Source: Octopus bimaculoides (lineage: Eukaryota). From it: DNA of 58,211 nt. A program made the position numbers and the translations under genes. The notes below the pieces were generated by a model. That model ran no database searches. It saw nothing but the letters and a program-made list of their open reading frames with translations, and was not told the DNA's origin. Shown piece after piece: positions 30,730 through 55,050 of the stretch; the stretch's first letter is position 1; every line of letters starts with the position of its first letter. The DNA lies in NCBI RefSeq assembly GCF_001194135.2, contig NC_068983.1, positions 119,038,935-119,097,145 on the forward strand, read 5' to 3'.

Positions 30730-31826
30730 GGATCTTTGGCCGGCACATTTAAAAAATAATTTTTTGTAACTAAACGCTTTCAAAATTCGTATACTGGTAG
30801 AATTTGTCACATAAAACATCATTTACTCTTGGCGTTTTTGAGGAAATTGTATATTTTCGAAGTTATTTCGTGTTAAATTTGTTGTATTTCGGTAATTTCA
30901 ACCAATCAATGACGTCTATTGAGATGAAAACAATTACTGTTGTTGTTTGTCAACAACTTCCGGCGGTGTATATTTCGTTTGTCACTGTTATTTATGACAT
31001 ATATTTCATCTGTTACGTTTGTATGAATAAACGAGTGTATCTGAAGCATGTTTACTTCATGGCACCACCACAATCGTTCGTGCATTTCTACTGGTTTTAC
31101 TTTGTTTTTTCCTGTTTTTCAGCTACTATTTTTGGAAAGACATTTTTGCCCCTTTCCCCTCCAATTTCTTCATTTTTCACATTTCCCGTAACTCTAACCC
31201 TAAAATCCCAACCCTAAATCTAACCCTAACCCTAACACCCCAACCCTAACCCTAAAACCCCAACCCNNNNNNNNNNCCTAACCCTAACTGTAAAACCCTA
31301 ACCCTACAACCCTAACTCTAAAACCCTATCCCTAACCCTAAAACTCTAACCCTGAGCCTAAAACCCTAACCCTAACTCTAAAACCCGAACCCTAACCCTA
31401 AAACCCCAACCCTAACTCTAAAGCCATAACCCTAACACTAAAACCCCAACTCTAAAACCCTATCCCTAACCCTAAAATCCTAACCCTGACCCTATAACCC
31501 TAACCCTAAAACCCTAAAGCTAAAACCAGTACAAACGCACGAACGATGTCATCAGTAACAGTGACAAACGAAATATACACCGCCGATGGTTGTTGTTGAC
31601 AAACAACGGCAGTAATTTTATTCAGCGGAATACACGTCATTGATTGGTTGAAATTACCGAAATCCGACAACTTTAACACGAAATAACTTTTAAAATATAA
31701 ACTTTTCTCAACACCACTAAGAGTAAAAGATATTTTATATGACACATTCTACCAGTGTCCGAAGTTTGAAAGTGTTTAGTTACAAAAAATTAATTTCTTG
31801 GTGTGCCATTCAAAGGGAAAAGATCC
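30730..31826. mobile_element. GGATC-ended foldback element, copy 1, with telomere-like core
   Basis: GGATCTTT...AAAGATCC ends; ~300-bp inverted arms; internal CCCTAA/CCCTAAAA array. Confidence 0.85.
31190..31525 (-). repeat. Degenerate interstitial telomere-like array (CCCTAA and CCCTAAAA, often as a 14-bp higher-order unit), contains a 10-N gap
   Basis: Directly visible. Confidence 0.9.
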
Positions 31827-33427
31827 GGGATTGGTGTAAACGACTTTATCCCTTTGTCTGTCCTTGTTAGTCCTCTCTGTTCAGCCCCATGTGGGCAATA
31901 AACAAATAAATATTTATTTTCATTGCGAACCATGGAACAAGAAGCTCGCATTGAACCGAAACTGTGACGCAGTTTCTATTCCCAGTTCAAGCCGTTTAAT
32001 TTCATTTACTTCACTAATACTTTTGAGAAAGACATAAACATCAAGATTTTTTCTCATTCCTTTTTTCCTGAAAATATGGGGGAAATGAAACCAATATTTC
32101 ATTTAACTTGTGTGTTGATAGAAACTAAAACACGACAGCCATTAAATATTGGACCAAAATCCGTCGAAGTCGACTTTACTGCTAAATCTTCCCACAATAG
32201 GCATAAGTATGTTACTACTAACATGTGGGCTGATTTAATTGACTATTTATGCCCAATAAATAAAAATAATCTGATCAAGACAGGATCCTTACACGGTCAA
32301 CCAATGCGGAACCTGATCCTCGAAAAGGTAGGTACCAAACTAGTTGCACTAATGAATTTTGTCATGTCCTTGAAGGAATATCAGAAATCCTTAAATGTCG
32401 ACGCTGTAATATTCCTATCGTTAATAGAATAAATACTTCCCTGTTGGTGAATACTGTTAGCAGACGGTACTGATAATTATGCGCCAAGCTGTTTGGGCTT
32501 CTTAAACTCGAGCTTGTTAGTCTTTAGACTCGATTAGCAGTGATTAATAATTATTTCGTTTTTAATTGTTGAGCAAATGATAGACTGCAAGGCACTTTCT
32601 TTTATCAGTTGAATTTCACTTTTTTACACTGCTTTGTAAAGGGCACCCTGCATACCTGTTAAAGCCTCCCCTCCCCCTGGTTCTTACCATATAACAGCAG
32701 TGCATTGTGTTCACGGCAAACTCTCGAGATAATTCTCAAAGGCTTAACATTTTCTTTGCGCCCTAGTTAGAAGAAAGTGCTATATTAAAAATTATTGAAG
32801 TACTAATTTCAGAAAATGGTTAAATTGCTCTTAATTAAAATTACATTGAAAGTACCAACATATAACATGTTTGCTTTGAAAATCATTTCAGAAACACGGA
32901 CTTTTACTAAAGTATATTTTGATCCCTAGTTTAATACTTGGTTTTGTACACACTGAAGATTTCGAATTTTGTTGTAATTTAACAGAACTTACAATCAATT
33001 ACCTTCTCCAAATCTATAAGACGAGATTAATTCAGCATGGCAAACTAAAAAAACTTTTTACCTACGACAATCAAATTCATCCCGGTATTCATATCGACTT
33101 TCATTTTCTTGTGAATTGTTCTGAGATATTACCATGGACACAACACTTTCCATGACATACAAGAACCGGTCACTCGTCGACTGATATATGTCACTTGTTC
33201 ACTTTACACACCATATTTTCTGTAATGTAACTTAAGTCTTTAAATAGAGTTGATAGAAACCTAGTCAATAGAGTACCGGTTAGTTAGCGAAAGCATTTGC
33301 AATTCATCTACTGTTGGCCTGACTGAAGAACTAGTTGTAATTATAACTGTGCTGACCGGTCAGTTTTAATCGGTCCAATCTACAGAAGGAGATGACTGAA
33401 TGATTTTTGGCGATCCACAAATTTAGT

Positions 33428-33856
33428 TCCGATATAATATATTGATTTCAAATTTGGGTACAAGGCCAGCAATTTTGGGGGAGGGGTTAAGTCTATTACA
33501 TCGACCACAGTGCTTAACTGGTACTCATTTTATCGACTCCCGAAAGGATAAAAGGCTAAAGAGACCATGGTAGTATTTGAACTCAGAATTTGAGACGGAA
33601 GAAATGCCGCCAGCCCGCCGCCTTCGTTTCGATATAATATATTAGTTTCAAATTTTGGCACAAGGCCAGCAAGTTCGTGGGAGAAGATAAGTCGATTACA
33701 TCGACCTCAGTACTCTGCTGGTACTTGCTCTATCGACGCCAAAAGGATGAAAGGCAAAGTCGACCTCGGCGGAATTTGAACTCAGGACGTAAAGTCGGAT
33801 GAAATGCCGCTAAGCATTTTGTCCGGCGTGCTAATGATACTGCCAGCTGGCTTCCT
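33428..33856 (-). mobile_element. Two tandem SINE family A copies (33428-33624 and 33628-33856)
   Basis: Both begin on the + strand with TTCGATATAATATATT.(G/A)TTTCAAATTT and match the family A reverse complement. Confidence 0.85.
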
Positions 33857-34249
33857 CCGTTTCTACGTATATGCGTCTTAGGTGGACTGAATGTGAAGTT
33901 TAATCCTTTTAAGAGTACGTTAATGTCATTGTGTAGGTGGTTTATGGTCGTAGCCATCTCAGCAGTGTGCGATGACGTGAAAAGCGCTATTTTTGTTATT
34001 TATAATTTATATATTTTAGGAAGAGGAGATTGAGAGCTCAAACACGATTAGTATAATTCACGATCGCTCTAATATATTATAGGCATACTAGTTGTTTCTT
34101 TATGTTGTGCTAAAAGTACTTTTAGAGTGTTAGTGTCGTTTTTCTTTCCTTACTATGTCTTCTATGGGAACTGGGAATGTTTGAAAAATGTTATAGGTAA
34201 CTTAGTATTTTGAAGGTCTATGTACGTGGTATGTTTATGTTATTGTGTC

Positions 34250-35450
34250 TAACTGTTGGTTGTATTTGATGTTCTCTGGGTGATACTAGTAAGAAGTGAG
34301 ACAGTGGAGTTGATATATGATACTTTTAGTCTATTGTTTGGAAAATGGTTTGTAAGTGGTTGACGTAGATGTAGAGTAGTTTTCCTACTATGTATGATGA
34401 TTGGTAAGAAGAGGTATTCTGATGTCATCCATGTATGGAGATGTTCTGTGCGGGTGAAGAGAAGTAATAGGGAATGTAGGTGAAGGTACATATTCTAGAT
34501 GTGTTGTTGTTGTACTCAACGTAGGCTTGTCGATATGTGAGATAGCTCGCCAGGCAGAATATTATAATGTTTTAAAGAGGTGTTGAATATGGTGTTTATA
34601 GTGAGTAGAGGGCGATTAAGCCGAAAATAGTTGTTAGAATGGTGTGTGAAAGAAAATTTTCGTAGTTTTGAACCCATTGTATATTTTACGTGAGAGGCGT
34701 GAGGTTTCTTACTTGTGTGATAGTCGAATGTAATGGTTTGAATTGATTTGAAAATTGAAAAAGAGGAATTTAGAGGTTGGAAAATTCGAGGTTAAAACTT
34801 TCTATGAATTTTAGATGTGTATGGGAGAGTAATGAACTGTTCTTTCTGATGTTGCTACGTTTGGATTTTGTTAGGTTTTAGGATTGTTATAATTCTCTCT
34901 ACTTTCTTAATATTTAGTCGTGTTGGTATAAGTAATTTAAGATGTGGCGATTTTAATAAACTTATTGTATGCTATGTCTATGATTGTGATTTTAAAGGTT
35001 TTGTATTTCTGTATTACTTTTTTGTTAATGTCTGGTGATTTAAAGGAGTTAACGCATCGTGGATATGTTACAGTCTTGTTTGCGTGGTTCTACTGATTGA
35101 TTTTTGAAAACACTGTGACAATGGAGTTTTATTATTGTTGGAGTGTAGGCTAGTCATTATTTCTCGTTATTGTACCATGTGATGAAATGCAGGCACCATT
35201 AGAACAGTTGTTACAGCTTCTTTGAAGCATTAAGTCGGATACAAGTATTTACTACTTTTCTACTATTCTGTCATCTACATTGTTATTTTCTTGTTTAATT
35301 GCTTGCTGCTAAGTTTTATATGTTTTGAACATACTGCTGACCTGTTGTCTCTACGTTTTAGTGAATATTTTAATTACGGTTGTATTTTTTATGGTTCTGT
35401 CTTCTTTTTAGACATTTCACTTATTTGTTATTTATTTAAACTGCAGTATC
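34250..35450 (-). mobile_element. Highly degenerate Penelope-like element ORF remnant (RT, linker, possible GIY-YIG)
   Basis: Minus-strand pieces GQQYVQ, NVDDRIV, FITLPYTSK...IFQPLN and QAYVEYNNNTSRM appear in the PLE order; strong strand-composition skew; many stops. Confidence 0.4.
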
Positions 35451-36924
35451 TATGTTGGCAATTGTATTGTTAATCTCTAGGAACAGTAGATGCTTCAAGG
35501 TGAAAATGTTACCCCCACTCTCATTTTTTCGTTTTGTTTCGTGAACTGAAACTTCTAACCCTACTCTCCAATTTCTAAGCCCATAAGGGTATTGGGTTGC
35601 ACTCTCTACGATGTTTCAGGTCATCGGAAAACGTATGATTCTAATATCTCCTATTTCCGAAACAATTGTAACAGATTAATAGGGTTCCTTCGACACAACC
35701 TCCCATATGACAGCTCCTGACAAATGAAAATCCATTCAATCTGTTTATCACTAACAATATTAATTTACTTTCACGTTACCTGTAACTGGAAACTCACAGT
35801 AGCAACCAAATGGATCTTCAGTTACCTTGGAATAAATGTAAACTTTGCATGTATTGAGTACACTTTTGTTTGTAACCAAATATATCCCCTCTCAATCGGT
35901 CGGCCACTATCTACGTATTGGGAACATACATCTGAAACTGAAGAAAGATACCCTCATCTATTCCATGAAGAATATCGTAATATCATTTAAGAACCTCACA
36001 CCATGTGCATCATAGTACATAAGGATAAACCAGTACTCAGTGCACTTCAATAAACGAAAAATTCATTGTTCCGGTCGAAAAACACATACCCGTCTGCAAC
36101 CATCGAACATAACTATTTATCAAGGCCCGCAGTGATGGGAAAGAAACAAAAACGGCAGGTAGTTGACAATAGAAGCCACGGTTCGTATCCTGCTTACACG
36201 CCGTTTAGGTATATGGTCGTCTGATACTCACCGACTGAAACACCAGTCGGCAGCCACCTAAATGTCTAGAGTTTTTCTAGGAAGAACACTGCTTGCTTCA
36301 CATGAAAAGAAAACTAGAAAGAGTGACCTAACCAAAATTCTTATTCAATTCCCCTACATAACCAGAATAGATTTCCTTTACAATTACTATGGCTGAGCAA
36401 CCCTGTCTGTTTGCAAAGCGAAATCATGATGTCTAAAAGTGAAATATAAGTTTAACTACTAGCTCTTGAAGTTACTCTCATGCGATCCAGTATATAAATA
36501 TTGGCATTGACCCGTAGTTTGATAGATCAGCGATTCAGCTTTGTCCAGATCTTTCAAGGGGTAAAATACTTTAACTGTTGTAATTATCTCCTTTGCTACT
36601 GTTGTTGACGAAATTATTAGACTTAATAAAATTATTTTCTACGTTCTTACGTTCGTTAAAGGGTTTGGAGCGTCTAGTATATGTAACAATATTTCCCATA
36701 TCAGTAGTGTAAGTATCTAATTTTTAAATTTTGCCGGTTAAAGAGTTTGGAATATTTGAATCCAATGGGAAACGCTCAATGACAAGGGCAAGAGAGTCAG
36801 AGTAACTGGATGTTGTAAACTGGAACAAAAATGTAATATATTTACTGAGCCTTGAGTGAGTTGTTTTCTTTTCCTTCGTTCGTAATATTACCGAGTATAT
36901 CATAACACAAGTACACTTAGCCAT

Positions 36925-37085
36925 GACACATTCTTTATTCTCTCCCTGTTTCTTTCTGTGTTCCTTTCTGTGGAAGAGCGTAGGCTCGAAACGTTTAAGA
37001 CTTTTTCACTTCCCGAGCGTTAAACTAATACATCTGTTTGTTGTTTATACTACGTGTCTTCGTCTTTTGTTTGTTTTTCTTTTTG
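36925..37085 (+). repeat. Dispersed repeat resembling a Penelope-like element terminus (partner 7965-8135)
   Basis: CTGTGGAAGAGCGTAGGCTCGAAACGT...CACTTCCCGAGCGTTAAACTAATACATCTG. Confidence 0.65.
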
Positions 37086-37689
37086 CATAATATTTTTATT
37101 TTGTGCTGTTAAATGTTTTAATTATTTCTGTTTTCCTCGCATACTGTTTTTATCTGTTATCTGGTGCGGTACGGTGGATTAATTTAAGACTTTAGCTTTT
37201 ATTTCAAGCAGGTAGATGCTTGTTGAGCATCATTACGCTTCGTGCAAATTTATAATTCATAGCTACATAATGCTATTGCACCTGCGATCTACCTATGTTA
37301 CTGCTGGTGATATCATCAATTTTAAAATTTATCAATAGATATGAACAGTAGTAACATCTGATTTCAAATCTCAGTGTTTGAATATTTTGCTTATATATAT
37401 ATATATATAGGTTACTGTGTGTGTGAGCGTGCTTATTTATATATACCAAAATTTGCATCATTGGAAGAAGATTAATTTGCTTTTAACCAGAATGCAAACT
37501 GCATTACAATGTTTTTCATTTTTTCAATCATTTCTAAAATACCCCGTGTTTAAAAGGTTTATACTGTGACAATAAAGACAGTCTCTTGCAGAGATAAAAT
37601 GTCTGTAAAAAGAATAATAGACTTTCATTTGAAACAAATGGCATCAAATATGTTCAGATCCTACCATAAACTCAACGTTTCAATAATTT

Positions 37690-38370
37690 ACGTTCGGGGT
37701 CGATAAAATATGTACCAGTTGGACATTGCAATTGATATAATCGATTTACCATCTCCTGGAAATTGCTGGCCTTGTGCCAAAATATGAAACCAATAGTTTA
37801 CCTTTCTCAAAAACATCGATTCATGCCCCACTTAGTCACCATATGGCCTCTGGTTGACTAATCCTTGTCCACTCCAGATGAAACTTTAATTTAGATCCTT
37901 ATCTTTCATGCATTACCAAAAGTAAACTTTAGCATCAATTTGGCATGACTGGTTGTCGAGGCACTCCACTATTGTTTCCTCAGCAAAAAATAAGAATCGC
38001 TAGATTTATTATCTTGAATAAATACGATTATGACAATATATATTCAATATTTTTCTCATTAGTATTATTTTGATATCAATCTGTTAAGTAAAGAAGTGTT
38101 TTTATCACCCATGATGATCTGTTCCAAAAGTGTAAAATGAAGTACAATGGAAGTCTATTTGCTTTATTAATATAGACCACGGACTGGCAGAATCGTTCGC
38201 ACGTCAAATTAAAAAACTGTTCAGCAGTATTTTCTTCATTTTTACACGCTGAGTTCCAATTCCGCTGGAGTTGACTTTGCCATCTCGGGCTCGTGGAAAT
38301 CGGTTGAGCATTGGGGTCGATGTAATCAACTAACCCTTCCCACAATATTACAGGCCTTGTATACCTATAG
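37690..38370 (+). mobile_element. Two SINE family A remnants (37690-37795 and 38175-38370)
   Basis: GGGGTCGATAAAAT/GTACCAG and CTGGCAGAATCGTT...GGGGTCGATGTAATC motifs. Confidence 0.7.
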
Positions 38371-39087
38371 TTAAAAGGATATTTGTGTTATTTAATAGAG
38401 GAATGAAGCAGGCATACTAAATGCTCAGTATTATATATTTTGTTACATCGCTATTTTAAGTTCAATGTATGCTAAAGTCTGTTTCATCCTCCAGTATTTC
38501 TGGGTTAATAATGTACCATATTTATTCGAGAGATTTTTAATATAACCCTATGACATTCCTACCTTGAAATATTTACTACAAATATGACAGAGCTTTCCCA
38601 CTTGTTATTACATCTCTCTTCTTCGTTACTTACCTACACTTGCCTTTCTACGTTTCATGATTCACTAAATTGTCGTGACACCATTTAAGGTAAGGTGACG
38701 TTTCATGCAAAATATGATATGAGCTCATCACATCGACTAACAAAACGTTCAAAGAAATTTAGTATCTGTGTCTTTTATCGACCTCGGTGAGAACTGAACC
38801 CAGAAGTTAGAGGGTGAAACTAAATATTGCTAGACATTTAATCCAGTGTTCCGTTTCCGCAATTCCACCGGCTTTAAATACATTTATTAATATTTGCTGT
38901 GACAGCTGTTTTTATTTAGCTCTGATTAAAATAACTCTGAAATTATACAAAGCCCCATGATTCTATATTTAAATGGTAAATCAGTGCTTTACTGCAGAAT
39001 ACTTTTTAGATATAAATATTTACTGCTTAAGCAAGTGCTGTACAGCAAAGGTTAAGCATCCGGCCATCCGAATCTGTGATGCTGCTT

Positions 39088-39178
39088 CAATCTCTAATTT
39101 GCTACAATCTCTTGTTTGCATGTAATTTGCTACAATCTCTAATTTGCGTGTAATCTCTTGTTTACTACAAATTTGCTA
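39088..39178. repeat. Short minisatellite, ~17-bp unit CAATCTCTAATTTGCTA
   Basis: About five degenerate units visible. Confidence 0.7.
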
Positions 39179-39429
39179 TTTGTGGAAGGCATAAATGCGA
39201 CACGTTTGTGCCACTCTACTGCTTCTAAGAATAAAATTAAAATGTGTATTAATAACTGTAGATTGTGTTGCATTAATAATGGTAAGCATCACGATGTCAT
39301 TTATTTAGTAAACAGTTGTTTATTGTCTGACGAGGCAAAAAGAAAAAAAAACATTTTCATTACTGTGTTTCAGTTGAGGAGGACATAATTTCCGGTGTTG
39401 TATTCACAGAACTGTCAGAGCATTGGACA

Positions 39430-40385
39430 AATGTTACGCAGATCTTCACTTTACCTTTCGTCCTTTCGGTGTCAATAAAGTATGTACCAGTTGAGCACTG
39501 AAGTCGATGTAATTGACTTATCCCCTTCTCCGAAATTGTTGGCCTTGAGCCAAACTTTAAAATCATTATTACATTTATTATTAAGGCAGCGAGCTGACAG
39601 AACCGTTAGCATGCGGACAAAATGCCCAACGACATTTCTTTCAGCTTTACGTTCTAAGTTTAAATTCTACCAAGGTAGACTTTGCCTTTCATCCTTCAGG
39701 ATCGTTAAAATAAGTACCAATCGAGCACTAGGGTCGATGCAATCGACTAGTATTTCAGTCCTTGTGACAATAAAAGAAGCGATTAATAAGAACAGTGGAT
39801 TGACAGAATCGTAAGAGCATCGGATAAAAATGCTTTGCAGTGATTGTTCCGTCCTTTTGCAATCTAAGTTCAAATCCCATCGTGGTTATCTTTACTTTTC
39901 ATTCTTTAATGGTCAATAAATTAAAGTACTGATCAAGTACTGCTCCCTTCTAAAATTCGACACCTTGTGTTTATGTAAGAAATTATTGGTTTCAAATTTT
40001 GGCACAAAGCCAGTAATTTCGGAAGGAGTAAGTCAATTGCATAAACACTAGTGTTCGACTGGTACTTATTTTATTGACCCCGAAAGGATGAAAGGCAAAG
40101 TCAACTCTGACGGAATTTGAATTCAGAAAGTAAAGGCGGACGAAATGCCCAGCGCGGTAACGATTCTGCCGGTTCGCCGCCTTTATGTAAGAAATTAACG
40201 TAATTTTCTTGAGAACAATAGATAAGCAAGATTGTCCAAGCGTTGTAGTAATTGTTCTGGCTCTTAACTTTCCGACGTCAAATTCTGCCGCGGTCAACTT
40301 TGTTTTTCACTCTCCCGGTGTCAAGAAAATAAAGTACCAGTCAAGTACTAGGATTACTGTATCGACTAACTCGCCAAATTATAAA
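39430..40385. mobile_element. Cluster of five SINE family A copies or fragments (four +, one - at ~39985-40185)
   Basis: Repeated head and body motifs at ~39430, 39583, 39790, 39985(-) and 40265. Confidence 0.75.
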
Positions 40386-41604: not shown

Positions 41605-41637
41605 TATTTATATTATTATTATTATTATTATTGTTGC

Positions 41638-41697: not shown

Positions 41698-41709
41698 TAN
41701 NNNNNNNNN

Positions 41710-41748: not shown

Positions 41749-42914
41749 CGAGAAGGAACGAAGAACAACAAAGAAATGTAGTTTCAGCTACCGATGCAAC
41801 ATTACCTAAAATAGATCAACAATGGAATGTTTGCGTGCCTGCTCAACCTCCTCTTCCCTATATCATACCTTATCCTAGTAGAAAATAAGGGGGGAAAAGG
41901 ATAAATCTAAGAAAGTAAAAGCCAAACGCTCGAAGCCGAAATGTTATCAACCTTAGGCCTGTTTCATCGGAGCTGACTTGGGACGAAGCGACCGAAATGA
42001 CAATATTGCAACGTAACCTTTTAAATCTTGACAATATTTATTGCTTTCAAAATGATTGTGTAATTCTAATTTTTGAAATTGCATAAATATTATGATACAA
42101 TTACGCATATTGTATTAAATATATTGAGAATTGATTTTATCGCTTCATATGTGCAAATTTGTACAAATTTGTATACAAAATATATAACTGAATTTGTGTG
42201 CGCGCATGCGCATACATCACCTTTTTGCATGCGCGCACGCTTGTGTGTGTGTGAGAGAGGGAGTTCATATTTCAAGAGATCTGTAAAAGAAATTGAAATT
42301 TGCTCCTTATCCTTAAGCTTCGATTATTTTATCATTGTAAGTTACATCATCTCATCATTCCATTCAGTTTGATATCCCATACAAAAACTGACTATCATTG
42401 AATAAACAAAATATACATGTCAAAGCAAGGTTAATGTTAGCAACCAATTGTTTATAAAAAAAATGTTCAGCTTTGCTTCTGTAAGCATGGAAAGAATTCC
42501 GAATGGCGCCTCGTAGACAGCAGTCGAATGTAAACAGTAAAACACGGCAATATACGTTTATATAATACTGATCTTACTGAAATGAGTGTGTTATTATTGC
42601 TGGTTTCATCATCTTTATCATCGTTATTTTCATCATTATCGTTGTAATGATTATGGATTTTGTAATTAAGAATGACCACCTAAAATTATGAAACTCGATG
42701 TAAATAGAATGTCGTAGTGTTCATACACTACATCTATTTACATAATGAGTGAAACATTCAGCTAAAAACCGATTCGCATATGAATTTCCAGCTGTCATAC
42801 TAACACCATCACTACTAACAACAACTTCAATCACCATCACCACAACGGCAGACCAAAGAAGGAGGCCTCTGAGTGGTTGCTTGACTCGTTAGAAGTAGCA
42901 AATAAATAGCCCTC

Positions 42915-43736
42915 GGATCTTTCTGATTTGGCGGACACCATTTGTTTTCTAACGAAACACTTTCAAACTTGGGATACAGGTAGAATGTGTCATATAAAAC
43001 ATCTTTTTCTCTTAGCCTTGTTAAGAAAAGTTTGTATATTCGAAGTTATTTCATGTTAAAAGTTGTCGTATTTCGGTAATTTCAACCAATCACTGATGTC
43101 TATTGAGGTGAAAACAATTACTGCTGTGGTTTGTCAACAACACGTTGAATAAAATTACTGCCGTTGTTTGTCAACAACAACTATCGGCAGTACTGTTATT
43201 TATGACATCGTCCGTGCGTTTGTACGGGTTTTAGCTTTGGGGTTTTAGGGTTAGGGTTCGGGTTTTAGGGTTAGGGTTATGAGTATTTTTGCTAAATTTG
43301 GTGAAAACTTTGTAGCGGTGTATTGAACAGATTTTCACAAAATTTGGCAAACATACTCATAGCCCTAACCCTAACCCTAACCCTAAATCCCAAACCAGTA
43401 CAAACGCACGAAAGATGTGATAAATAACAATACCGCCGATAGTTGTTGTTGACAGACAACGGCAGTAATTTTATTCAAGGGAAAAGATCCCATTACACCG
43501 CCACAAAGCGTTGTTGACAAACCACAGCAGTAATTGTTTTCACCTCAATAGACGTCAGTGATTGGTTGAAATTACCGAAATACGACAACTTTTAACATGA
43601 AATAACTTTGAATATAAAATTTTTTCTCTGTTCTATAAGACAAAATATACAAGTATACGAAGTTTTAGAGTATTTCGGTAGAAAACACTAAATAAAAACT
43701 AAATAAAATATGGTGTCCGCCAAATCAGAAGGATCC
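42915..43736. mobile_element. GGATC-ended foldback element, copy 2, with head-to-head telomere-like repeats
   Basis: TIR GGATCTTTCTGATTTGGCGGACACCA / TGGTGTCCGCCAAATCAGAAGGATCC; TSD TAGCCCTC / TAGCCCAC; core TTAGGG, hairpin, CCCTAA. Confidence 0.92.
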
Positions 43737-45049
43737 TAGCCCACAAATCACAACCTACTGCTTTATAAAGAAACGACATACTTGATAATGTGATCGTAAA
43801 TAAACACTAGAATGGGATGGTCATTTTTTAAAAACCATTTTAATGTTAGGCCTGCCCAGTCAGAGCTAAAATGGGGCTAAACAGTAACAACATCGTGAAC
43901 ATCAATCACCATAATATCAACATAATGATTACAAGAAATGAGTCCTCCAATCAGAATGAGCTCGTCAGACTTAGTTGAGTTACTCGAATAGAGAAACTGT
44001 GATTGGGAACCGAAATGCCACGCTCCCTAAAGATACTAACTTTATAAAGAACGAATAGACAGATGAGTGTACAAACGTAAAAATAATTAAATCAGTTGTT
44101 CTCAACTTCTTGTTCATCACCTCCTTTGCATATTTCAATGGCGCCTCAGCTGTGCCTCCTACTCTTTTTTTTTTTTTTTTTTTTTTTTAGATAATTGCAT
44201 GGATTAGTTTACCTCCCTAGTTAAATGTTTATGAAAATTACTAAAAGCGAGAGTGTATGAGATTATATTAGACTCCAGCGCTTTATCAGTTATGTTTCTG
44301 CTTACTGATAACATAAGGTTTAACTCATATTCTAACCCCGACAATGATTTTGGTAATGTGTTTAAAATATAAGTATCGCACCTGGTTTAAACATTTTATT
44401 TCTAAGAAAATTCTGTCCTTTCTAAATACCTAGCACCCATCATAGCCGTCTCCCACCCTTGATATATACCGCCCTCTGATGAACTCAGAACGCCCACAAG
44501 GGTGTGCTACCGCCCAAGTCAAAGCACTATGTTAGACAAATGAAACTGAAGCTGACGTTTCTTTCATTGTTGTCTTTTAATTTTTTGTGTATTTTTTTTA
44601 GTGAGGTGGGAGGTGTAATGATGCAGCATTAAGCGGAGAACAGGTTGTATCTTAACTACTGCTTGAAAGATTAGGATATTCTACTGCTGTCGTGGAGTTT
44701 TACTTTAAAGATCTTTAAAAATACCACGACATAGGTGATATGCTCGTACTAATAAATACTATTATAGTAATGTTTACATTAGGCCCTTTAATATGCGGAG
44801 GAAACCTCTTCCAGATAAGAGGAGTTAATATTCATCTAGTATCATATTTAGGAGGTGAGAGAAAGATCAGGATTGACGAAAATGTGTTACAGTATCAAAT
44901 GGAATTAGTATGATGGCATAGGCACTGATAGCAGGGGCAGTGGGCACAAATGCCGAGCGCCGACGAATAAAATTTCGTCGATCAGGCAGACAAACGCTAT
45001 TTTCCTTAGGACATATTGGTAATATACGCATTGCCGCAAATGTATAAGC

Positions 45050-45200
45050 AATATTTATTTCTTTATTGTCTACAGGGGGCTCAACATAGAGGGGACAACT
45101 AAGAACAAAGGGATTAAATCGATTACATCGATCCCAGTGCATAACTGGTACTTATTTAATCGACCCCGAAAAAATGAAAGGCAAAGTCGACCTCGGGCAA
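45050..45200 (-). mobile_element. 5'-truncated SINE family A
   Basis: Reverse complement of the family A body and AAAGAAATAAATAT tail. Confidence 0.8.
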
Positions 45201-45510
45201 ATGTTCAACCAATATTGCCCAGATTAATACGTGCTCGTGTCTTTGTACAAAATCTGGTCAGATTGATTGCACTTGTTCAGCTTAATGTCATCAACTGGCA
45301 TTTGTCTGTCGTGAGCAGAGTTCACTTTCTTTTAAACATTCGGCTCAGGAGTGCGAGCTGAAGATTTTCACTCATTTCTTTCCATCCATCTCGGTGTCCC
45401 TGCAAAAGACCATCAGCAATCCCCATAATCCTTTGTCTAAATAAGAAAATTTCATAAAAACACCTATTAATTAACAAAACAACTGTGTGTGCACGTCCAT
45501 ACAAGCAGGT

Positions 45511-45559
<49 letters not shown>

Positions 45560-46523
45560 ATCACACACACATATATATATATGTTATAGATATTTGTGAC
45601 ATGAATTTCGTGTCCCGCAGTTTATTCGAACAGTAATTAAACAGAGCTTATAATTCTTTAGATTAACTTAAAATTCGAATCAATCACTATAATCTTATAG
45701 AATACCAAATTTACTAAATTCATTTCTCATAAATAAACCTTTTTTAACAAAAGATCTTATTTTGTGTAAATACCTATTTGTCTCGGTGTGTGAGTAAATC
45801 TTGAGAAGCGAATGTTGAAGTCAATTCGAATATATAATTAATTTGACTCCGTCCTTATCGAGTCATTTATCAGTAAATGTGTCTTGTTATTTGTCATTTG
45901 GCAACCCTAACAACAATAATGTGCGTGCGTGCGTGTGTGTGTGTGTGTGTGTGTGTGCGTGTGTGCGTGTGTGTGTGTGTTGTATGTGTACGGTTAATGC
46001 CGTCTGCTGTTACTTCAAGTTTCATGATTGTTCAATCTATTTAACAGTCGTTGTTGGCTTATAATGAAAGACATGTTTTAATCCAAGATAGTGCAGGCAC
46101 TACGCTATTTTATTGCCTAACATAGATCACGTAAGTAACATGAAAAATCGATAATTCACGACTGACAAGTTTTTCGAGAAAGTATATAACACTATATCAT
46201 TCTCAGGATATATTTTCATATACTTCTCATAGGCAAAAATCAACATTTTACTGACATATTAGTTTGGATTTCTAGGTGAAGTTTCTTGATATGTCATACA
46301 TCACAGAGTGAACAGAACACCTCTGTCTTAAGGAAAGTTTGCACTAGATTTGATAGCAGAAATCAACATTCAACTTAAAATTTATATTACTGTTTTATGT
46401 TGAGTATCCTAATAGTCCTTGTGTTGGCTGTAGATCCAGCTAAACTGCAATTCAAAACCCACAGGAAGAGGAATATGATTGAATACTACAAGTTTTTTAC
46501 GATTTATTATTTATTTATATATT

Positions 46524-46745
46524 GAAGGCGGCGTGCTGGCAGAACTGTTTTGCGCACCAGACAACTTGCTTAGTAGCATTTCGTCCGTCTTCGCATTCTG
46601 GGTTCAAATTCGGCCGAGGTCGACTTTGGCTTTCATCCTTTTGGGGTTGATAAAATAATTACTAGCTGAGTACTGGGATCAATGTAATCGACTTATCTCC
46701 CTCCACCAAACTTGTTGACCTTGCGCCAAAATTTGAAACGATAAT
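46524..46745 (+). mobile_element. SINE family A
   Basis: AAGGCGGCGTGCTGGCAGAA head, GGGTTCAAATTC B-box, full body. Confidence 0.85.
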
Positions 46746-47330
46746 TTATTCATATATTTATTGCATGGAGACACAACAGATAGATGTCTTCTCTCGTATT
46801 TAAGATGTGGTCAAATAGTATCATAACATTGCATTTTTCAGTTGCATGTTATTTGACAGAAACTCCGCTATAGCCGGTTCCAAGTCCGGTTGAGAAAGGA
46901 AGAGGGTGGTAGGTGTAGTGTTAGCAGCCTTGCTCTTTCAATTTTGTTCATTGTTACTGAAATGCAAGAAGTATATATATGAAGTTTCTTTTGGTAAGAG
47001 GAGGCAGTCATCAGAGACTGTGTATGAAGCAATGCATCGAAAACCAAGAAGAAGTTATGATGTAGAAGAACTTTCTCTCGACAAGACCAAAAACCAAAAT
47101 ACACAGAAGCTCCACAGAAATTGAAGCACTGACAGGCGGCTATGCTTGGTTACAATTGCAATTTATTGCGAAGGATCAAGACAAATGGAGATCATTTGTT
47201 GGCTCACTATGCTCCGTTTATAGTCAAAGGAGATAATGAATAATAGCTGACTGTAGATTTTTGTCTCACTCAGCACAAACATAGATCTATACATACACAT
47301 ACGTGTATGCGTGTGTTTGACTATTTTACA

Positions 47331-47362
<32 letters not shown>

Positions 47363-49407
47363 CTGGCTGTTACTCTTGATATTTTGTAAACTCGGCTCAT
47401 ACTTTTATGTTATGTCACTTGCAAAAGATTTGTTGGACTAGTTTCTTCTGAAGTAAAAGTGTCATTATTTCCCACTGAACTCCAGAAAAAGTATAACTAT
47501 CAAAGCAAATTATAAGTGGAATATAACATATTATAGTAAGAAAAGCGATAAATTGTTTGTTATTGCGCTTTAGTTTGAAATTGCGTGTAGCTAAATCAAA
47601 ACTAAAAGCAAAGTTATGTTGTGTGTCTATTTTAAGAACAAACCAAAGTTATTTGAAGACGAAGTATAGCAATAGAAATCTTAGGGTGATGTGTGAATGA
47701 GACAATATTATCTTTAAAGTAATAGTCTTTACTAACCTATATTATATACTTTCTTTCCATATGTTGTGCAAATGAGCTCGAAACGTAATTTGTCATGACG
47801 ATTACAAACAACTACTTGCATATGAGTAAGTCATCATTCGTAGGATCAAAGTGTAGAACCATTTTATTTATTGTGACACTAAGTGACAGTACTTAAAGAA
47901 ACTTTCATGGTAACATCACGTATTTCCCTTCAAAATATAAACATCAAATCAAAACAGAGAAGCATCTTAATATACAAGATGCTTCTCTTCTATTTTATTT
48001 TCAGATCAAAGGGGAGCCTATACTTGACTATTCCTACGTTCTAGAATAGAACTATCCATATTTATCACGTTAAAAATGCAAGCACTTCCTGGACAATGTA
48101 ATCTTAGACAAGCTGTGTGACAAAAGAAGAAACGGTATAATCATGTGAGAACGACTTTGAAATAGGTCTCCTGGATCAGAGCTAACTTGAAGTTAAACAA
48201 GAAAACCAAGTAGCATTTGAGCTTTTAACAACAGATTTACTACAATGGTTTATAATTTATGGGACTTAACCCCATAATTACAAATATATTTCCTATATAG
48301 AATTAATTAGTTATTTTTAAGTCTGGCGTCTTGTGTAATTAAAATCAACTACTAAGTATTCTATCAGAGCATAAGTAATGTAGTAGGTTCTACATATTTT
48401 ATATGTTGTAGGGAAGCTTCTAGACATATGACTGTTTAGTATGTTAACCTAGTGTAACACTCTCTAATGACAAGTGTCAAATATAGCAACTTGATGTGGC
48501 GACATAATGGAAATGAAATTGCTGAGAAGATAAAGTGTTGTGTTACCAGCTCGTGTCTTGCTGCTTGTTTCCTCGTGTTTCTCCGCTGTACACTTAACTC
48601 TATGTGCCCCGCAAATGACTTTCTGCTACTATAGCTTGGACCTCTTTCCAAGTTGCCGAAATGCTCCTGTGGTCTAAATATGTGGTCTTATTTCATAAGG
48701 AAACTAAATACATATTATGATTCCATATATCAATGTATCTTAGTTCACCTATCTATTAGGAAAAGGTTTTAGATCTGCTGCTGACATTACTGGACTTAAT
48801 ATCTTCATAGAAAAAACATTCCGAATTTCTAAAACACCAAAATCCGAAAAGCTTCCGATTTAAAACGTTGCAGACGAATGATAATTCAACGTATAAGTTA
48901 TTGTTTAAGCAGCATGTGTAACTAAGTTTCATATTTTGCTAAAACATATATTTAATTTGTTAAAGCGGATGCTTTGCTTCAATACCGTCTTACTGCTCTC
49001 TTTACACTTTATATATGGTAGCTTAGGTTTTAAAAATATTATTTACAACATTGTTTATGAGGTTAAGAGGTTTGTGGGAAATATCCTCTCTGAAGATTGT
49101 ACTAACTGAATGTATATTTTCAATCCAAACAAAATACTAGCAAGACGTTTTAAAAAGGTGGTTAACCAATCGGTACTGGAATATGAAAATGTATTGTTCT
49201 GTATATATCATATCAACGTCTTTTTGGAATATAGTTATCCACTATATCATATATAATATATGATTGGAAGACATAATATTCATAAATTACTCCACTCAAT
49301 ATTCGCCCATTACTTTTATTTTGAAGCAAGATGGACTCATTTAACAGCAATAAAAGCACGATCGAATTTCTAGATGGTCATTCAGTTTGTGAGAAACAGC
49401 TGCCAAG

Positions 49408-49565
49408 CACGGGTGGACTGAGCCGTCGGTCAATCGAGCACTGCCCGAGGGCCTGGAGCTCTGAGGGGCCCGCATTCTACATGTTAACGCTACTTTGATA
49501 TCAATGCTAAGGGGCCCGGTAAACACTTGTGTCTGAGAGCCCTTAATATTCTCAGTCCACCCCTG
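49408..49565. mobile_element. 158-bp hAT-type MITE
   Basis: 15-bp TIR CACGGGTGGACTGAG / CTCAGTCCACCCCTG (14/15) and perfect 8-bp TSD CTGCCAAG (49400-49407 and 49566-49573). Confidence 0.92.
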
Positions 49566-50134
49566 CTGCCAAGTATACCTAATGTACGTCTTAATGTCTG
49601 AAAAGGGTAAGACACATTGGATAAAGTAGTCCAAGACAAAATGGGATATTCACGACTGAAATGCATTTGTACATGGGTCTGTCTGCACGATTAATATAAT
49701 CTGAACCGAAATATCACCAATAACAATATATACATCATGTATGTATGTATGTATGTATGTATGTACGTACATACGTACGTATGCATATATAGATGTATGT
49801 AAATTCATATATATTCATGCAAGCGCGTACACACACACACATATATGCTTACATATCGTATAGTAGAATTCTATTGTTGCATAATTTAAGAATTGGAAGA
49901 TGTTGCTGAGGATGTATAGAACGCATTGATAGAAATATACTTTAACATGACCCAGGAGTGTATAAATAATGTAAATGGCGTTGATGTAGAAACAATAGAT
50001 AAGCCATATCTATGACATATATACATACATCACATTTAAGTACGAAGTTCGCATATTTCTTCTCGACACACCCACAGCAGACGTCACGCTAAAATAAGCC
50101 AATCAGCACTCATTGAATAACTACATTTACACAT

Positions 50135-50137
<3 letters not shown>

Positions 50138-50199
<62 letters not shown>

Positions 50200-50200
50200 T
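50138..50200. repeat. (CT)n(CA)n microsatellite
   Basis: Directly visible. Confidence 0.95.
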
Positions 50201-50343
50201 ATACACATGCATGTGACTAGGTGTACAAGTGTGTGCGCATTCGCGCGCGCACGCGTGTGTGTGATAGGCAGACACAATACGTATGCGCATACATATCAAA
50301 ATATATGCACATATACATAAATACATACACGACTGTATGTGTG

Positions 50344-50387
<44 letters not shown>

Positions 50388-50946
50388 AAATTATAATACA
50401 GGGTATCTAAGAGATACCGCCACGCTGAAAAATAGCAGTCAAAACCTGACTCTAAAGCATATCCACACTACCACACTTGCAACGTAGATGTTATAATACC
50501 ATATCTCGATTTAAGTGTACGTGAAGGTATTTAGAATGCCCAAACTTATTTCTGCACTAATGCTGATCATAGTTTAATCAACAAGCGTAGGAGTGAAGTA
50601 AATGCAGAGATAATAGTAGGGTCATCGGGGCCCCAATTAAGCGGCCCTTCAGAAATTGAACCGTCTGGGAGTTTATGATATGAAATTCATTGTCATTGCG
50701 CCAATTTGGTCGCCAATGCCATGTATTTGGTTTAAAATGCAGTAAGAATTGGGCCGGGGCGGGGCAGGTGGGACCGCAAATAGATGACCCTTTAAAAAAT
50801 AGGCCCCCTTAGGATATTTTCCTGGGATTAGGGGAGTTGCTGGTTCGAGTTTCGTTGTCCTTGCACCAACGGTCTAGGAGGAGTTAACGAACATAAAAAC
50901 GTAACGGACAAAGAAACATCACTCAAATTTATAATATATATCCTAA

Positions 50947-50984
<38 letters not shown>

Positions 50985-50990
<6 letters not shown>

Positions 50991-51270
50991 GTTACGCGTA
51001 TTTCACTTGTGATCGTGAGACCGTGGTTTCGAACACCAGACCTGCTGCACGTTGTTTTCTTGAGCAAAACACTTCATTTCACGTTGCTCCACTCCGCTCA
51101 TCTGTGTATGGGTAACCGTGTGGCAGACTAGCCGTCTCATTAGGGAGAATGTTGGCCTGCTCGCCTAGCCAGCAGCTAATGTCGTTTGGAAATTAAAACG
51201 ACGCAAAGCGCATTGTGACCACCGATATTCAACAGCATTCGATAGTCTAATCAATCACGTGATATATATA
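50985..51270 (+). mobile_element. tRNA-derived SINE, family D, with CORE-like segment
   Basis: TAGTGGTT A-box remnant, GGTTTCGAACACC B-box, CTTGAGCAAAACACTTCA CORE-like motif, microsatellite tail. Confidence 0.6.
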
Positions 51271-53043
51271 TATGTGTGTGGGTGGGGTTGTATGTATGTG
51301 TGTGTGTGAATGAGTGAGTGAGTGCCTGTGTCTGTCCCCCACTAACATTTATAGATTTTGTTTTATTTGACGATTTACTCCAACATATAAAAATCACTTT
51401 TCGCTTTCAGGTGTAAAATCAGCAGTCATGATGTTGCTTTTCATTGAAATCTTCATTTATACCAGCGTTAAAGATTCTAGCGACAATATCCTTGTTGGGA
51501 AAGATCAATATCTACTTTTGAACCTTAAAAATACAGGCGATTATCTTTTGAGTTGGGAAACACTAATATAAACTCCCTGAATATTTTATCAAAAAACCAT
51601 CCGATTTTAAATACTTAGTCATTTTACTTCATGTATTTCGCTTAATGCCCTGCAGAATGGTAAGTACTTCCCATTTCCTCTTTACTTGCTCACTCCCGTC
51701 ACAAGTTTATGTTTATGTTTAAAACATATATGACATCATAAATAAATAGGCAATTATAAATATGTTTAACTGTCTTTCCTTTCCTTATTTTGAGATTTGC
51801 TTTGGTGAAACAAATGGTGTTTATGCCTAATTTAGATCATGGCGGTGGAGACTGCAGCGCTGTTTCCAATCCCAATTCGTACTACTTAACTAATGTCTTT
51901 AGGATGTACGAACGCCTCGAACCTTTCCTATCGTTTCCCTCCTTGTCACAACTGTTAACTTCACGGTTAATTAATAAATCATTATTATTGCTGGTGGTAT
52001 TCTTCTTCTTGTTACTATCACACGTGTTTTCTTTATTCTGTGTTCCTTCATGTCAATTATCTTACGCTTTGCTGAGCTGGCTTGTACTTGCCATGTAACG
52101 AGAGAACAGAAATCAGTCAAGTGAATGACGGAAATGAGAAACTGATAGATGAAGCGAAAAATTGACTAACCTACACAAAACAGAACCAATTTAAAGTTAA
52201 TATTCCGATGGCATAAATACTCTGGAGAAAAATGTATCTGTTTTGATTGTTTTGCTTTCCCCCTCTGGCTCATTGTAGGAATTGCATAGTAAGTACTCAA
52301 GTATCATCCCAGCTGAATTGCTTCGGTGTTTACAAGTTTTCTATCGCTTTAGTCTCATATTATAGAAGTCTCTTGAAAAAACATTATGATTGATTATTTC
52401 GACTTGTAGATAATGTCAGACGAAGGGAAAAAAGATCCCACTAAGTGGGAGAAATCTATACATATACATATGGCAAAATAAAGTAAACTTGGTCCGGAAG
52501 AATATATAAAAGTCTACATTCATGCAGCTGTTTCCACAAACTTATATACAACGATACATTTCAAAATATGATTTTAATTGCATCAGTGTAGTTGATGTGA
52601 TAAGAAAAATTGCTATATTTTATCTCAATTCACAATTTATTTTTTTCTGTTTTTTATTTTTTTTATTTATTAGTTTACAATATAACAGAAGTAGTGGATA
52701 GGAAATTTGGTAAAGCCTAGAGCACGTGCTGAGTTCAAATCGTGCTAAAGTCAACTTTGTCATACAATTTTATGAAGTTGATAAAGTAAATACCACTCTA
52801 GTACTAGGGTTGCTTTAATACACTGTCTCACTCTGCCTTGTGTCAAGGCAAAGAAAAGAATCAATATTAATGAAATATATTTAGCACCTTCTATTGTTAT
52901 TGTCATTGTTGCAGAGTAAACTGTCCCCCTCAGACTTGTAATGACCTCTAGAGATTACACAAAACATGGCATCACTAACAATAATATATCTGATGATTTC
53001 CAGCTCATAAAACTTGTTTTTCTTTTTATAATAAATTACACAT

Positions 53044-53225
53044 AAGGCGGCGAACTAACTGAACCGAACAACGTGCTTAGCGGCATTTCGTCCAAGCTCA
53101 AATTCTGCCGAGCTCGACTTTGCCTTTCATTCTTTTGGGGTCGATAAAATAAGTACCAGTCAAATATTGTGGTCCATATAATCAATTTCCTTCTCCCCCT
53201 CAGTGCCAAAATTTGACACCATTAT
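53044..53225 (+). mobile_element. SINE family A (internally deleted)
   Basis: AAGGCGGCGAACT head; CGACTTTGCCTTTCATTCTTTTGGGGTCGATAAAATAAGTACCAG body. Confidence 0.8.
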
Positions 53226-54405
53226 ATATTAGGTATTAAATCGTGTAGTATATGGAGGATCTTGCTCTAAAGAGGCAGTAAAAACAGGTTTGTTAGAGAA
53301 ATAGCTAAGAATCTGGAGTAGCCAATGTGGATCATTGGCTACCTCAGATTTCATGTTTTTAATTATACCTTGTTTTGAAATTAAGAAGTTAACGTATTTA
53401 GTTCAAGTTTAACGAAAGAATATGTATATAATTTAAACAATAATCCGAACAATGGACATGTAGTGCACACAATGTGTAAATACAGATAAGAATATTAAAA
53501 TGTTTGGTTATAATTCACAGGAAAAAAATATAAAACTTTATACGTTTTAAAGTTTCCTCCTGCTTACGATAGTTATATGGAACTTTAACATTCTATTTGC
53601 TATAAAACAATCAACTTGGACACAATCATCTATCAAACCTTTTTGCTATCAATTAAAATTACTGTGAACTTAATACTTTTTGAATGCCAAATTAATTTTC
53701 GAACAACAAAGTTGATATTTAATAGTGGTATCTTTCTGAATTTGCTTTTATCTTTAAGATAGTCTATGATCATTTCCAAATCAACTAGAATTTCCTGAAA
53801 GCCGTACAGAATGATAAGCGACCTATTCGGTATGTGAACTCCCATGACTCTCTGGAGCTTGCGAATATTACTAATAAACAGTCTGTTATTGCGCAATTAC
53901 CGATGTTAGCTTAAATGAATTATGATAAATGTATAATTGCTTAGAACGCTTCACAGCATGACACACTTAGTCTCATAGAAATACTTGCGATTATAACTCT
54001 AATATTATTCTGCAGCTAGATTAAATTTTAAGTATATGTTTTAAACATACATTGATACTATTGCGTATTAAACTGCTCAGATTCTAAATTCCAGTACTGA
54101 ATTGCATGGTTCAATTCGTTTTGGGGATATGGTTTTTAAGCAAAAAATATGTTTTCACACACTGAACTGTTAGGTATATTGAAATAGTAAAGTATAAGGA
54201 GCAAATAATTCTTAAGTGGGAAGGAATTGTAGAATATTTTATTTATTAGAAGTAGTAGTTTTCGCAATAGGGCTCTGTAATACACAGGCTTGACAGAATA
54301 TTTCCAATTTACAATTGTATTCTTACATTGATTTCTTACATTGGTACCATGTACCATAATGTTGCTTTCTAAAGGAAGAGAATAGTCAGTTGAATGGGAC
54401 TTCAG

Positions 54406-55050
54406 GGATCTAGTTCAAAACGGGGGCACCAGTATTTTCTTAACGAAACACTTTGAAACTTGGGACACTGGTAGAATGTGTCATATAAAACATCTTTTTC
54501 TCTTAGTCTTCTTAAGAAAAATTATAATATTGCAATTTATTTCATGTTAAAGTTGTCGTATTTCTGTAATTTCAACCAATGACTGACGTCCATTCAGCCG
54601 AATACATTAAGTGCTGACTACGTAAACAAACGATTCTCAAACGATTCTGGCGGTGATAAAATTATTATTTCCTTGTCAAAAAATGGCTGAAGCATATTGG
54701 CAGTAGCTAATAAACCTTTCTATTATAGGCACAAGGCCTGGTTTTTTAGGGAAGGAGCAAGTCAATTAGAGTTAGGGTTAGGGNNNNNNNNNNGGAGATT
54801 AAATACGCTTTACACCGCTTAAACTGCCAAAGGAGTAAGTATAAACAGCTGAATATTGGTTGAAATTATTGAATTGGTTGAAATTATCGAAATAAGACAA
54901 TTTTTTACATGAAATTAATTCGAATACAAACATTTTTTTCTGTTCTATAACACAAAATAGATAAGTATACGAAGTTTGAAAGTCTTTCGGTACCAAAAAC
55001 ACTACATAAAACATAAATGAAAACTGGTGCCCCCATTCTGAACTAGATCC
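54406..55050. mobile_element. GGATC-ended foldback element, copy 3
   Basis: TIR GGATCTAGTTCAAAACGGGGGCACCAGT / ACTGGTGCCCCCATTCTGAACTAGATCC; perfect 8-bp TSD GACTTCAG (54398-54405 and 55051-55058); TTAGGG repeats run into an N gap. Confidence 0.92.

Follow-up and report, generated by a model that had tools for sequence, protein, structure and literature searches.

The question raised by this locus is how TTAGGG-type, telomere-like repeats come to lie at several internal positions of one short chromosomal stretch. The DNA analyzed is a stretch of 58,211 nt from Octopus bimaculoides (36% GC; hereafter, the window) in which microsatellites and short interspersed elements (SINEs) are plentiful and a frameshifted long interspersed element (LINE) is present, and in which three related sequences with long inverted arms, here called copies 1, 2 and 3, carry such repeats. 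These sequences very probably represent three independent and fairly old insertions of a single family of non-autonomous, foldback-type class II transposons with terminal inverted repeats (TIRs).

Three copies of one family in the window

Each copy was compared with the whole window by BLAST, and the matches were confined to the three intervals 30730–31826, 42915–43736 and 54406–55050 (E values down to 1e-71). The inverted arms of copy 1 (30753–31000 and 31546–31796) are 85.7% identical over 251 bp (E = 1e-71) and the outer arms of copy 2 are 95–97% identical over 116–122 bp. Between copies, arms share 84–86% identity over 170–200 bp; for copies 2 and 3 the values are 86.3% over 183 bp (left arms) and 83.6% over 165 bp (right arms). 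A profile hidden Markov model (HMM) of the six arms, searched with nhmmer, returned the same six arms (E = 1e-45 to 1e-72) together with the second unit of a duplicated 37-bp subrepeat, and revealed no older remnants of the family in the window. As neither BLAST nor the profile HMM found arm homology elsewhere in the 58 kb, the window contains exactly three copies. An earlier note on this DNA, made from its letters only, had described three copies with shared arms at these positions, GGATCT…GATCC-type ends and 8-bp target site duplications (TSDs), one of them degenerate; the searches above and the observations that follow bear out all three claims. The copies, their TSDs and the SINE used as a reference for copy 1 are as follows (strand in brackets where one applies).

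30722–30729: left TSD of copy 1, TGGATAGA, from alignment to the paralogous SINE
30730–31826: copy 1, assembled length 1097 bp including a gap; left-type arms on both sides (BLAST, nhmmer)
31827–31834: right TSD of copy 1, GGGATTGG, from alignment to the paralogous SINE
42907–42914: left TSD of copy 2, TAGCCCTC, from sequence
42915–43736: copy 2, 822 bp, gap-free; left-type and right-type arms, near-complete foldback
43737–43744: right TSD of copy 2, TAGCCCAC, from sequence
45050–45186 (minus): paralogous SINE, empty-site reference for copy 1, from continuous alignment of the joined flanks
54398–54405: left TSD of copy 3, GACTTCAG, from sequence
54406–55050: copy 3, 645 bp as assembled; left-type and right-type arms, oriented as copy 2
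55051–55058: right TSD of copy 3, GACTTCAG, a perfect match

All six ends begin with GGATC (GGATCT in five, GGATCC in one). Those of copy 1, GGATCTTTGGCCGGCACA and GGATCTTTTCCCTTTGAATGGCACA, match apart from one 7-nt indel. The terminal 28 nt are 93% identical end to end within copy 2 and within copy 3, as against 46–61% between copies; what is conserved across copies is GGATCT at positions 1–6 and a GGCACC-like motif some 15–20 nt further in. A regular expression for this terminus had no match in the 58 kb other than five of the six ends (0.26 matches expected from shuffles), the end that it missed being the left end of copy 1, which has a shorter spacer.

TSDs of 8 bp flank all three copies, and the target sequences are unrelated to one another. 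That of copy 3 is intact (GACTTCAG/GACTTCAG, 8/8 matches) and that of copy 2 nearly so (TAGCCCTC/TAGCCCAC, 7/8); in both cases the bases beside the TSD differ, so the duplication is exactly 8 bp long and the element starts at GGATC. Copy 1 is inserted in a SINE, with a TSD (TGGATAGA/GGGATTGG) of which both halves have decayed from GGGATCGA. Its left flank ends in CACT-GGATAGA and its right flank starts with GGGATTGG-TGTAAACGA; once joined, the flanks form one continuous alignment to a paralogous SINE at 45186–45050 on the minus strand, which reads CACT-GGGATCGA-TGTAATCGA (alignment segment CACTGGGATCGATGTAATCGA). One and the same 8-bp target, GGGATCGA, is thus preserved in decayed form on both flanks of copy 1, and the SINE at 45186–45050 is a paralogous empty site, which accounts for the degenerate TSD. 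A left boundary at 30723, given by the MAFFT/nhmmer alignment, was rejected, because the right flank resumes the SINE from GGGAT and so requires an 8-bp duplication. The SINE family that copy 1 interrupts is abundant in the window, where it also forms a tandem dimer (33426–33810, period 200 bp, 78% matches), and presumably resembles the abundant tRNA-derived SINE of octopus.

Inverted ends, TSDs of fixed length that differ from insertion to insertion, a paralogous empty site and the absence of transposase coding are together the hallmarks of class II TIR transposons, and the differing targets and unrelated flanks rule out segmental duplication. Insertion proceeded through staggered cuts 8 bp apart at the target, resulting in the 8-bp duplications, and a DDE transposase acting in trans would recognize the GGATCT...GGCACC ends.

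Foldback architecture and arm anatomy

Arm anatomy was described on copy 2, which is free of gaps. Folded as single-stranded DNA, this copy forms a single hairpin from its first to its last base, with a free energy of -306.5 kcal/mol compared with -82.8 +/- 5.9 kcal/mol for dinucleotide shuffles (z = -38). Each arm is built of five parts, described here from the outside inwards, of which the telomere-like array is the innermost. The terminal inverted repeat is about 27 nt long (GGATCT, then 8–15 variable bases, then GGCACC). The subterminal arm, of about 200 nt, contains the block ACTGGTAGAATGTGTCATATAAAA in left-type arms and the block GGTAATTTCAACCAAT in five of the six arms, the right arm of copy 3 having the variant ATAATTTCAACCAAT. 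A 37-bp subrepeat (core ATTACTGCYGTKGTTTGTCAACAAC) follows, doubled in each arm of copy 2 and single in copy 1, and then a short inner arm that ends in ...CGTGCGTTTGTACTGGTTTTAGC. Copy 2 thus has the build of a foldback element: its arms make up almost the whole of it, it folds into one hairpin, and it is modular, with the 37-bp subrepeat in two copies and arrays of 20-bp and 6-bp units.

Left and right arms can be told apart. Alignment of the right arms of copies 2 and 3 involves 12 gap columns, whereas that of either with a left-type arm involves 42–57; this indel architecture, common to the two right arms and not to the left ones, indicates that the arms are differentiated and that copies 2 and 3 are co-oriented. 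Copy 1, with left-type arms at both sides, represents a second subfamily. Its left arm has a 75-nt insertion and has lost the array; about 83 bp of unrelated sequence follow, and then a single expanded array joined to the right arm.

The centre of copy 2 (43281–43361) is an 81-bp, perfect-looking inverted repeat with a central loop of about 13–23 nt and TA on both flanks. No second copy of it was found in the window by BLAST, and the centres of copies 1 and 2 share no homology above the null. It could be a continuation of the arms or, alternatively, a Stowaway-like mini-MITE (miniature inverted-repeat transposable element) inserted exactly between both arrays, which without these 81 bp abut as GGGTTA followed by GCCCTAA.

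Two further motifs were observed in the arms. The sequence AACCAAT(N2-4)TGAYGT, a CCAAT box followed by a TGACGT similar to the cAMP response element, occurs in five of the six arms (30900–30915, 31634–31649 on the minus strand, 43084–43099, 43552–43567 on the minus strand, and 54574–54589), in every case oriented inward to the telomere-like array, and could be a site bound by the transposase or a promoter that faces inward. A 31-nt insertion in the right arm of copy 2 (approximately 43478–43508) includes the terminus of copy 1, GGATCTTTTCCCTT, at 43477–43490 on the minus strand, adjoined by the motif GGCGGTGTA that elsewhere starts the inner arm; this internal terminus may be the relic of a nested insertion, the product of a template switch or an alternative end.

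Telomere-like tracts at the inner arm ends

TTAGGG is the sole telomere motif that has been determined experimentally in cephalopods (PMC13218726). The copies make up 4.5% of the determined bases of the window, yet they contain 33 of its 44 TTAGGG/CCCTAA hexamers and all 13 tandem dimers, in keeping with the TTAGGG-type cores first attributed to them. The tracts and adjoining features are located as follows.

31189–31527 (minus): telomere-like array of copy 1, degenerate 20-bp unit (TRF, period 20, 14.5 copies, 70–78% matches)
43226–43280 (plus): left array of copy 2, G strand on plus (TRF 43240–43278, period 20, 100%)
43281–43361: centre of copy 2, 81-bp inverted repeat (sequence and fold)
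43362–43396 (minus): right array of copy 2, C strand on plus (TRF and sequence), with the perfect run GGGTTAGGGTTAGGGTTAGGG at 43363–43383
43477–43490 (minus): internal copy-1-type terminus GGATCTTTTCCCTT in the right arm of copy 2 (regular expression and sequence)
54740–54783 (plus): left telomere-like tract of copy 3, G strand on plus, ending in TTAGGGTTAGGG at a gap

In all four arrays that can be observed, the G-rich strand runs 5' to 3' from the arm to the centre, so that copy 2 has the head-to-head layout (TTAGGG)n...(CCCTAA)n. Hexamers also form part of a 20-bp higher-order unit, TTTTAGGG-TTAGGG-TTCGGG. The left array of copy 2 holds two perfect copies of this unit (GGGTTTTAGGGTTAGGGTTC), and its right array four perfect TTAGGG units, within the minus-strand run GGGTTAGGGTTAGGGTTAGGG listed above. 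Copy 1 has at least about 14.5 copies of a degenerate 20-bp unit in a single orientation (TRF matches of 65–78%), the G-rich strand being the minus strand and running from the right arm to the centre, and copy 3 has only two perfect units ahead of its gap. Array length thus varies, at 35–55 bp per arm for copy 2 and no less than 329 bp for copy 1, and replication slippage would have altered it. The tracts are impure: next to the perfect (TTAGGG)4 of copy 2, all three copies hold degenerate arrays, and the 58 kb around the copies consist of ordinary repeats. Directly before the TTAGGG run of copy 3 (54728–54772) lies GGCACAAGGCC, an 11-mer otherwise present only at the SINE heads at 33657 and 37778; a SINE-head fragment inside copy 3 was considered and rejected, given that similarity past the shared 11-mer is not significant (p = 0.14).

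Where inner arm passes into array, the right arm of copy 1 agrees with the left arm of copy 2 (...GTGCGTTTGTAC[T/G]GGTTTTAGCTTT[A/G]GGGTTTTAGGGTTAGGG), and the right arm of copy 2 comes close; the junction ...CGTGCGTTTGTACTGGTTTTAGCTTTAGGGTTTTAGGGTTAGGG is common to these three arms. The 20-bp unit and its TTC variant likewise occur in both copies 1 and 2. This sharing of junction and unit indicates that the tract was already present in the common ancestor and was carried by transposition, not added locus by locus. The telomere-like tract is thus a passenger that was acquired once, ahead of the divergence of the sampled copies, and then dispersed by transposition; it was gained as the 20-bp unit beside pure TTAGGG runs and moved with the element thereafter.

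Assembly gaps within the elements

Two of the six gaps of the window fall inside the elements, compared with about 0.27 expected from their 4.5% share of the bases. The gap at 31267–31276 lies in the array of copy 1, with repeat units of unchanged C-strand orientation on either side; continuity and phase cannot be established across it, and the array length given for this copy is therefore a lower bound. In copy 3 the left tract runs into a gap at 54784–54793 after ...GAGTTAGGGTTAGGG (TTAGGGTTAGGG), and the downstream side (GGAGATTAAATACGC...) is not continuous with it. Compared with the left arm, the right arm of this copy resumes about 110 bp short of the array, so that at least about 110 bp, plus the centre, are hidden or deleted. 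A further gap, at 41700–41709, lies in a TAT/TA microsatellite outside all copies. Reading frames are untouched by the gaps, the elements being non-coding. The excess of gaps in the elements leads us to infer that the hairpin-plus-repeat structure hampers sequencing, and suggests that short-read assemblies break at this family and under-represent it.

Coding capacity and searches for relatives

The elements are 0.65–1.1 kb long and have no capacity to encode a transposase. The sole open reading frame (ORF) of more than 110 aa, 30804–31217 in the left arm of copy 1, is confined to that copy and gave no homologue in a protein search; no ORF is common to more than one copy, and in the commoner arm variants all frames are closed within about 15 codons. 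Comparison with Rfam gave no family match inside the elements.

Outside the window, the family was not found in the viral contigs and prokaryotic genomes scanned. ENA/Logan loci around homologues of the LINE reverse transcriptase (RT) of the window, which come from other organisms (44–47% GC, LINE 77% identical), contained neither a copy of the family nor a TTAGGG dimer, and an exact look-up of the RT ORF itself returned no record. Two exact 22-mer matches in metagenome contigs were dismissed as chance, agreement being limited to the seed. No cut-and-paste family of foldback type whose arms end inward in telomere-like arrays emerged from the literature searches, for cephalopods or other organisms; the family may already be catalogued in Repbase or Dfam.

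Superfamily assignment and alternative explanations

Merlin transposons have TIRs of 24–462 bp with a conserved terminal 5'-GG, TSDs of 8 or 9 bp and, in several families, internal tandem repeats, which according to the authors of the survey Merlin could spread; the 191 Merlin sequences in Octopus bimaculoides are among the highest counts cited for Bilateria (PMC8101967). The present family agrees with Merlin in its 5'-GG (six of six ends), its 8-bp TSDs (three of three copies), a TIR length within that range, internal tandem repeats and the abundance of Merlin in this host, and the fit to Merlin advanced in the earlier note is thus in accord with the survey. It differs in being a near-complete foldback whose passenger repeat corresponds to the telomere motif of its host, a combination not described in PMC8101967, and in that no DDE_Tnp_IS1595 transposase is linked to it here. 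Merlin is the best-fitting candidate for the source of the transposase, at roughly even odds. For classifying non-autonomous elements, Repbase asks that terminal positions 1–11 align to a classified family (PMC4455052).

Several observations count against parts of this interpretation. Only three copies were examined, all in one 58-kb window, and the symmetric head-to-head layout is complete in just one, since copy 1 has no left-arm array and the centre of copy 3 is behind a gap. Neither a transposase nor an autonomous partner was found by the searches above, so that the superfamily depends on TSD length and two terminal bases. Other superfamilies, namely hAT, P, Novosib and Zisupton, also make 8-bp TSDs. 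Like Merlin, Novosib and Zisupton are almost restricted to cephalopods among molluscs (PMC10294476). Finally, aligned arm columns differ by about 15–35% between copies, which makes current activity doubtful; together with the one decayed TSD, this divergence points to old rather than ongoing activity. The proposal that a non-autonomous family is spreading interstitial telomeric sequence stands as regards independent insertions and an inherited tract dispersed by transposition, and is doubtful as regards activity at present.

Mobilization by one of these other 8-bp-TSD superfamilies is possible, if doubtful. hAT elements are common in cephalopods, and the TSD length fits them. Their termini are YARNG, however, and P ends start with CA, whereas the ends here are GGATC, neither YARNG nor CA-initial; moreover, the three targets do not match the hAT consensus nTnnnnAn, and the TSD boundaries of copies 2 and 3 cannot be shifted. 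For Novosib and Zisupton, the accessible literature offered no documentation of the termini. A Mutator-like transposase of the Phantom/Foldback type, as proposed for most foldback elements, is fairly unlikely. In its favour, inverted arms that are long and modular and hold tandem repeats typify foldback elements, and the ends of Mutator-like elements often begin with G. Most foldback elements have been assigned to Mutator, Tetris among them on the basis of its 8–10 bp TSDs, yet the same source holds that the foldback shape can arise independently in different superfamilies (PMC4079207). Against it, each of the three copies has a TSD of exactly 8 bp, as opposed to the variable, typically 9–11 bp TSDs of Mutator, a weak argument with n = 3. 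Accordingly, of the foldback/Phantom label originally given to the family, the foldback part is upheld by the hairpin of copy 2, and the Phantom part suits the architecture but not the TSDs, of 8 bp in place of the usual 9–10.

Explanations that dispense with an inherited tract, or with transposition altogether, fare worse. Independent addition of the tracts to each copy after insertion, for instance by telomerase healing at fragile hairpin centres, would draw on the break-prone nature of palindrome centres and on the inward polarity of the G strand, which is that expected if both broken ends were healed. Insertion by telomerase at double-strand breaks is moreover a documented origin of many short interstitial telomeric sequences (ITSs) (PMC8537989, PMC6410037). 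Separate healing events would, however, give differing junctions and pure TTAGGG, in contrast with the arm/array junction and the unusual 20-bp unit with its TTC variant that the copies have in common, and this explanation is very improbable. That the loci are relics of chromosome or telomere fusion, local duplications or an assembly artefact could be argued from the head-to-head (TTAGGG)n(CCCTAA)n of copy 2, a signature of telomere-telomere fusion, and from the assembly gaps that two copies hold. It is refuted for the present copies by three sets of defined ends with different 8-bp TSDs, unrelated flanks, the paralogous empty site and a copy 2 without gaps, and survives only as a hypothesis on the origin of the ancestral element.

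Origin of the telomere-like tract

The first acquisition of the tract, before its dispersal within the transposon, is consistent with telomerase extension of both ends of a break at the palindrome centre as well as with telomere-telomere fusion, the polarity of the G strand fitting both. The palindrome of copy 2 extends inward beyond the arrays into the 81-bp centre, which counts against the simplest form of both models. A more specific scenario, which we consider unlikely, is that the family was born at a chromosome end, where a transposon end beside the telomere would have been duplicated in inverted orientation, either through sister-chromatid (telomere-telomere) fusion or through telomerase healing and rejoining of a broken palindrome. 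Each foldback arm would then be a mobilizable 'subtelomere plus telomere' unit, and if the centre of copy 2 is a later mini-MITE, the arrays may abut as they do in telomere fusion.

Comparison with known systems

The closest described analogue in architecture is Tetris/DAIBAM of Drosophila virilis, which is likewise non-autonomous and without a known partner. Its TIRs are long and modular, made up of flanking, tandem-repeat and inner domains, the number of internal repeats is variable and open to expansion, and its TSDs measure 8–10 bp (PMC4079207). The repeat of Tetris is a 220-bp unit that derives from its own TIR and seeds a satellite (PMC4079207), while the present elements carry a telomere-like unit of 6, 8 or 20 bp at the innermost arm end, are far smaller (0.65–1.1 kb) and have a fixed TSD of 8 bp.

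Telomerase-inserted ITSs resemble the present tracts in being short, partly degenerate TTAGGG sequences at internal sites, and differ from them in being single-locus repair scars without TIRs or TSDs (PMC8537989, PMC6410037), whereas the present tract has been multiplied by transposition. By analogy, telomerase insertion at a double-strand break may have been the source of the tract of the ancestral element. Among reviews, that of 2019 mentions transposition of ITSs by mobile elements only as a possibility (PMC6410037).

The modular inverted arms of other foldback elements, and the telomeric repeats of other mobile elements, offer partial parallels. Sea urchin TU and Drosophila FB elements, compared here by description only, have modular inverted arms made up in part of short tandem repeats that are not telomeric; TU elements make 8-bp TSDs, and FB elements, which are allied to Mutator, 9-bp TSDs. 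Ciliate Tel-1/TBE1 elements and telomere-associated Penelope-like elements carry host telomeric repeats and so make internal tracts of them. In the former the repeats are at the outer termini and in some of the latter at the 3' end, not at inner arm ends, and their movement is Tc1/mariner-like or by reverse transcription.

Implications

The family provides a clean case at the sequence level, with defined ends, TSDs, an empty site and a tract inherited within the element. If copies are abundant, they would account for a good part of the TTAGGG found inside a cephalopod genome; that of Octopus bimaculoides measures about 2.7 Gb. Should the family also have been born at a chromosome end, it could be the main source of interstitial telomeric sequence and a dispersed reservoir of telomerase seeds or of templates for alternative lengthening of telomeres; under the same assumption, the repeats might be transcribed from the inward CCAAT/TGACGT motifs. 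Effects on telomere-protein binding, fragility and chromosome healing are a matter of speculation. Internal TTAGGG tracts could in principle also mislead telomere-based assembly checks and scaffolding guided by the telomere motif, as with the TTAGGG option of the cuttlefish assembly (PMC13218726).

Other features of the window

A 166-aa ORF without a Pfam match (12012–12512, minus strand) opens with peptide repeats of the MQPG/MQPD type, encoded by a 24-bp repeat with a 12-bp sub-period, CTGGTTGCCTGGCTGCACGTCAGG, that is present in five copies at 12399–12524. Two other ORFs, 2620–3282 on the minus strand and 23034–23507 on the plus strand, also lack a Pfam match and are homologous to each other (33% identity over 105 aa, E = 1e-21); the likely reading is that each is the first ORF in one of two copies of a retroelement family in the window. 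At 13962–14082 on the minus strand, a full-length, degenerate match to 5S rRNA (53.6 bits, gathering score 38) is followed directly by the tRNA/SINE-like sequence ggcgtggctgtgtggttagaag...gggttcagtg, and the whole may represent either a SINE derived from 5S rRNA or a 5S pseudogene to which a SINE has become joined. The LINE remnant at 27745–29344 on the plus strand has its RT domain (Pfam RVT_1) split across frameshifted ORFs; the best named relative of this RT is from the cuttlefish Acanthosepion pharaonis (52% identity), and among other relatives, those on long ENA contigs show about 50% identity and those on short Logan/ENA contigs as much as 67%.

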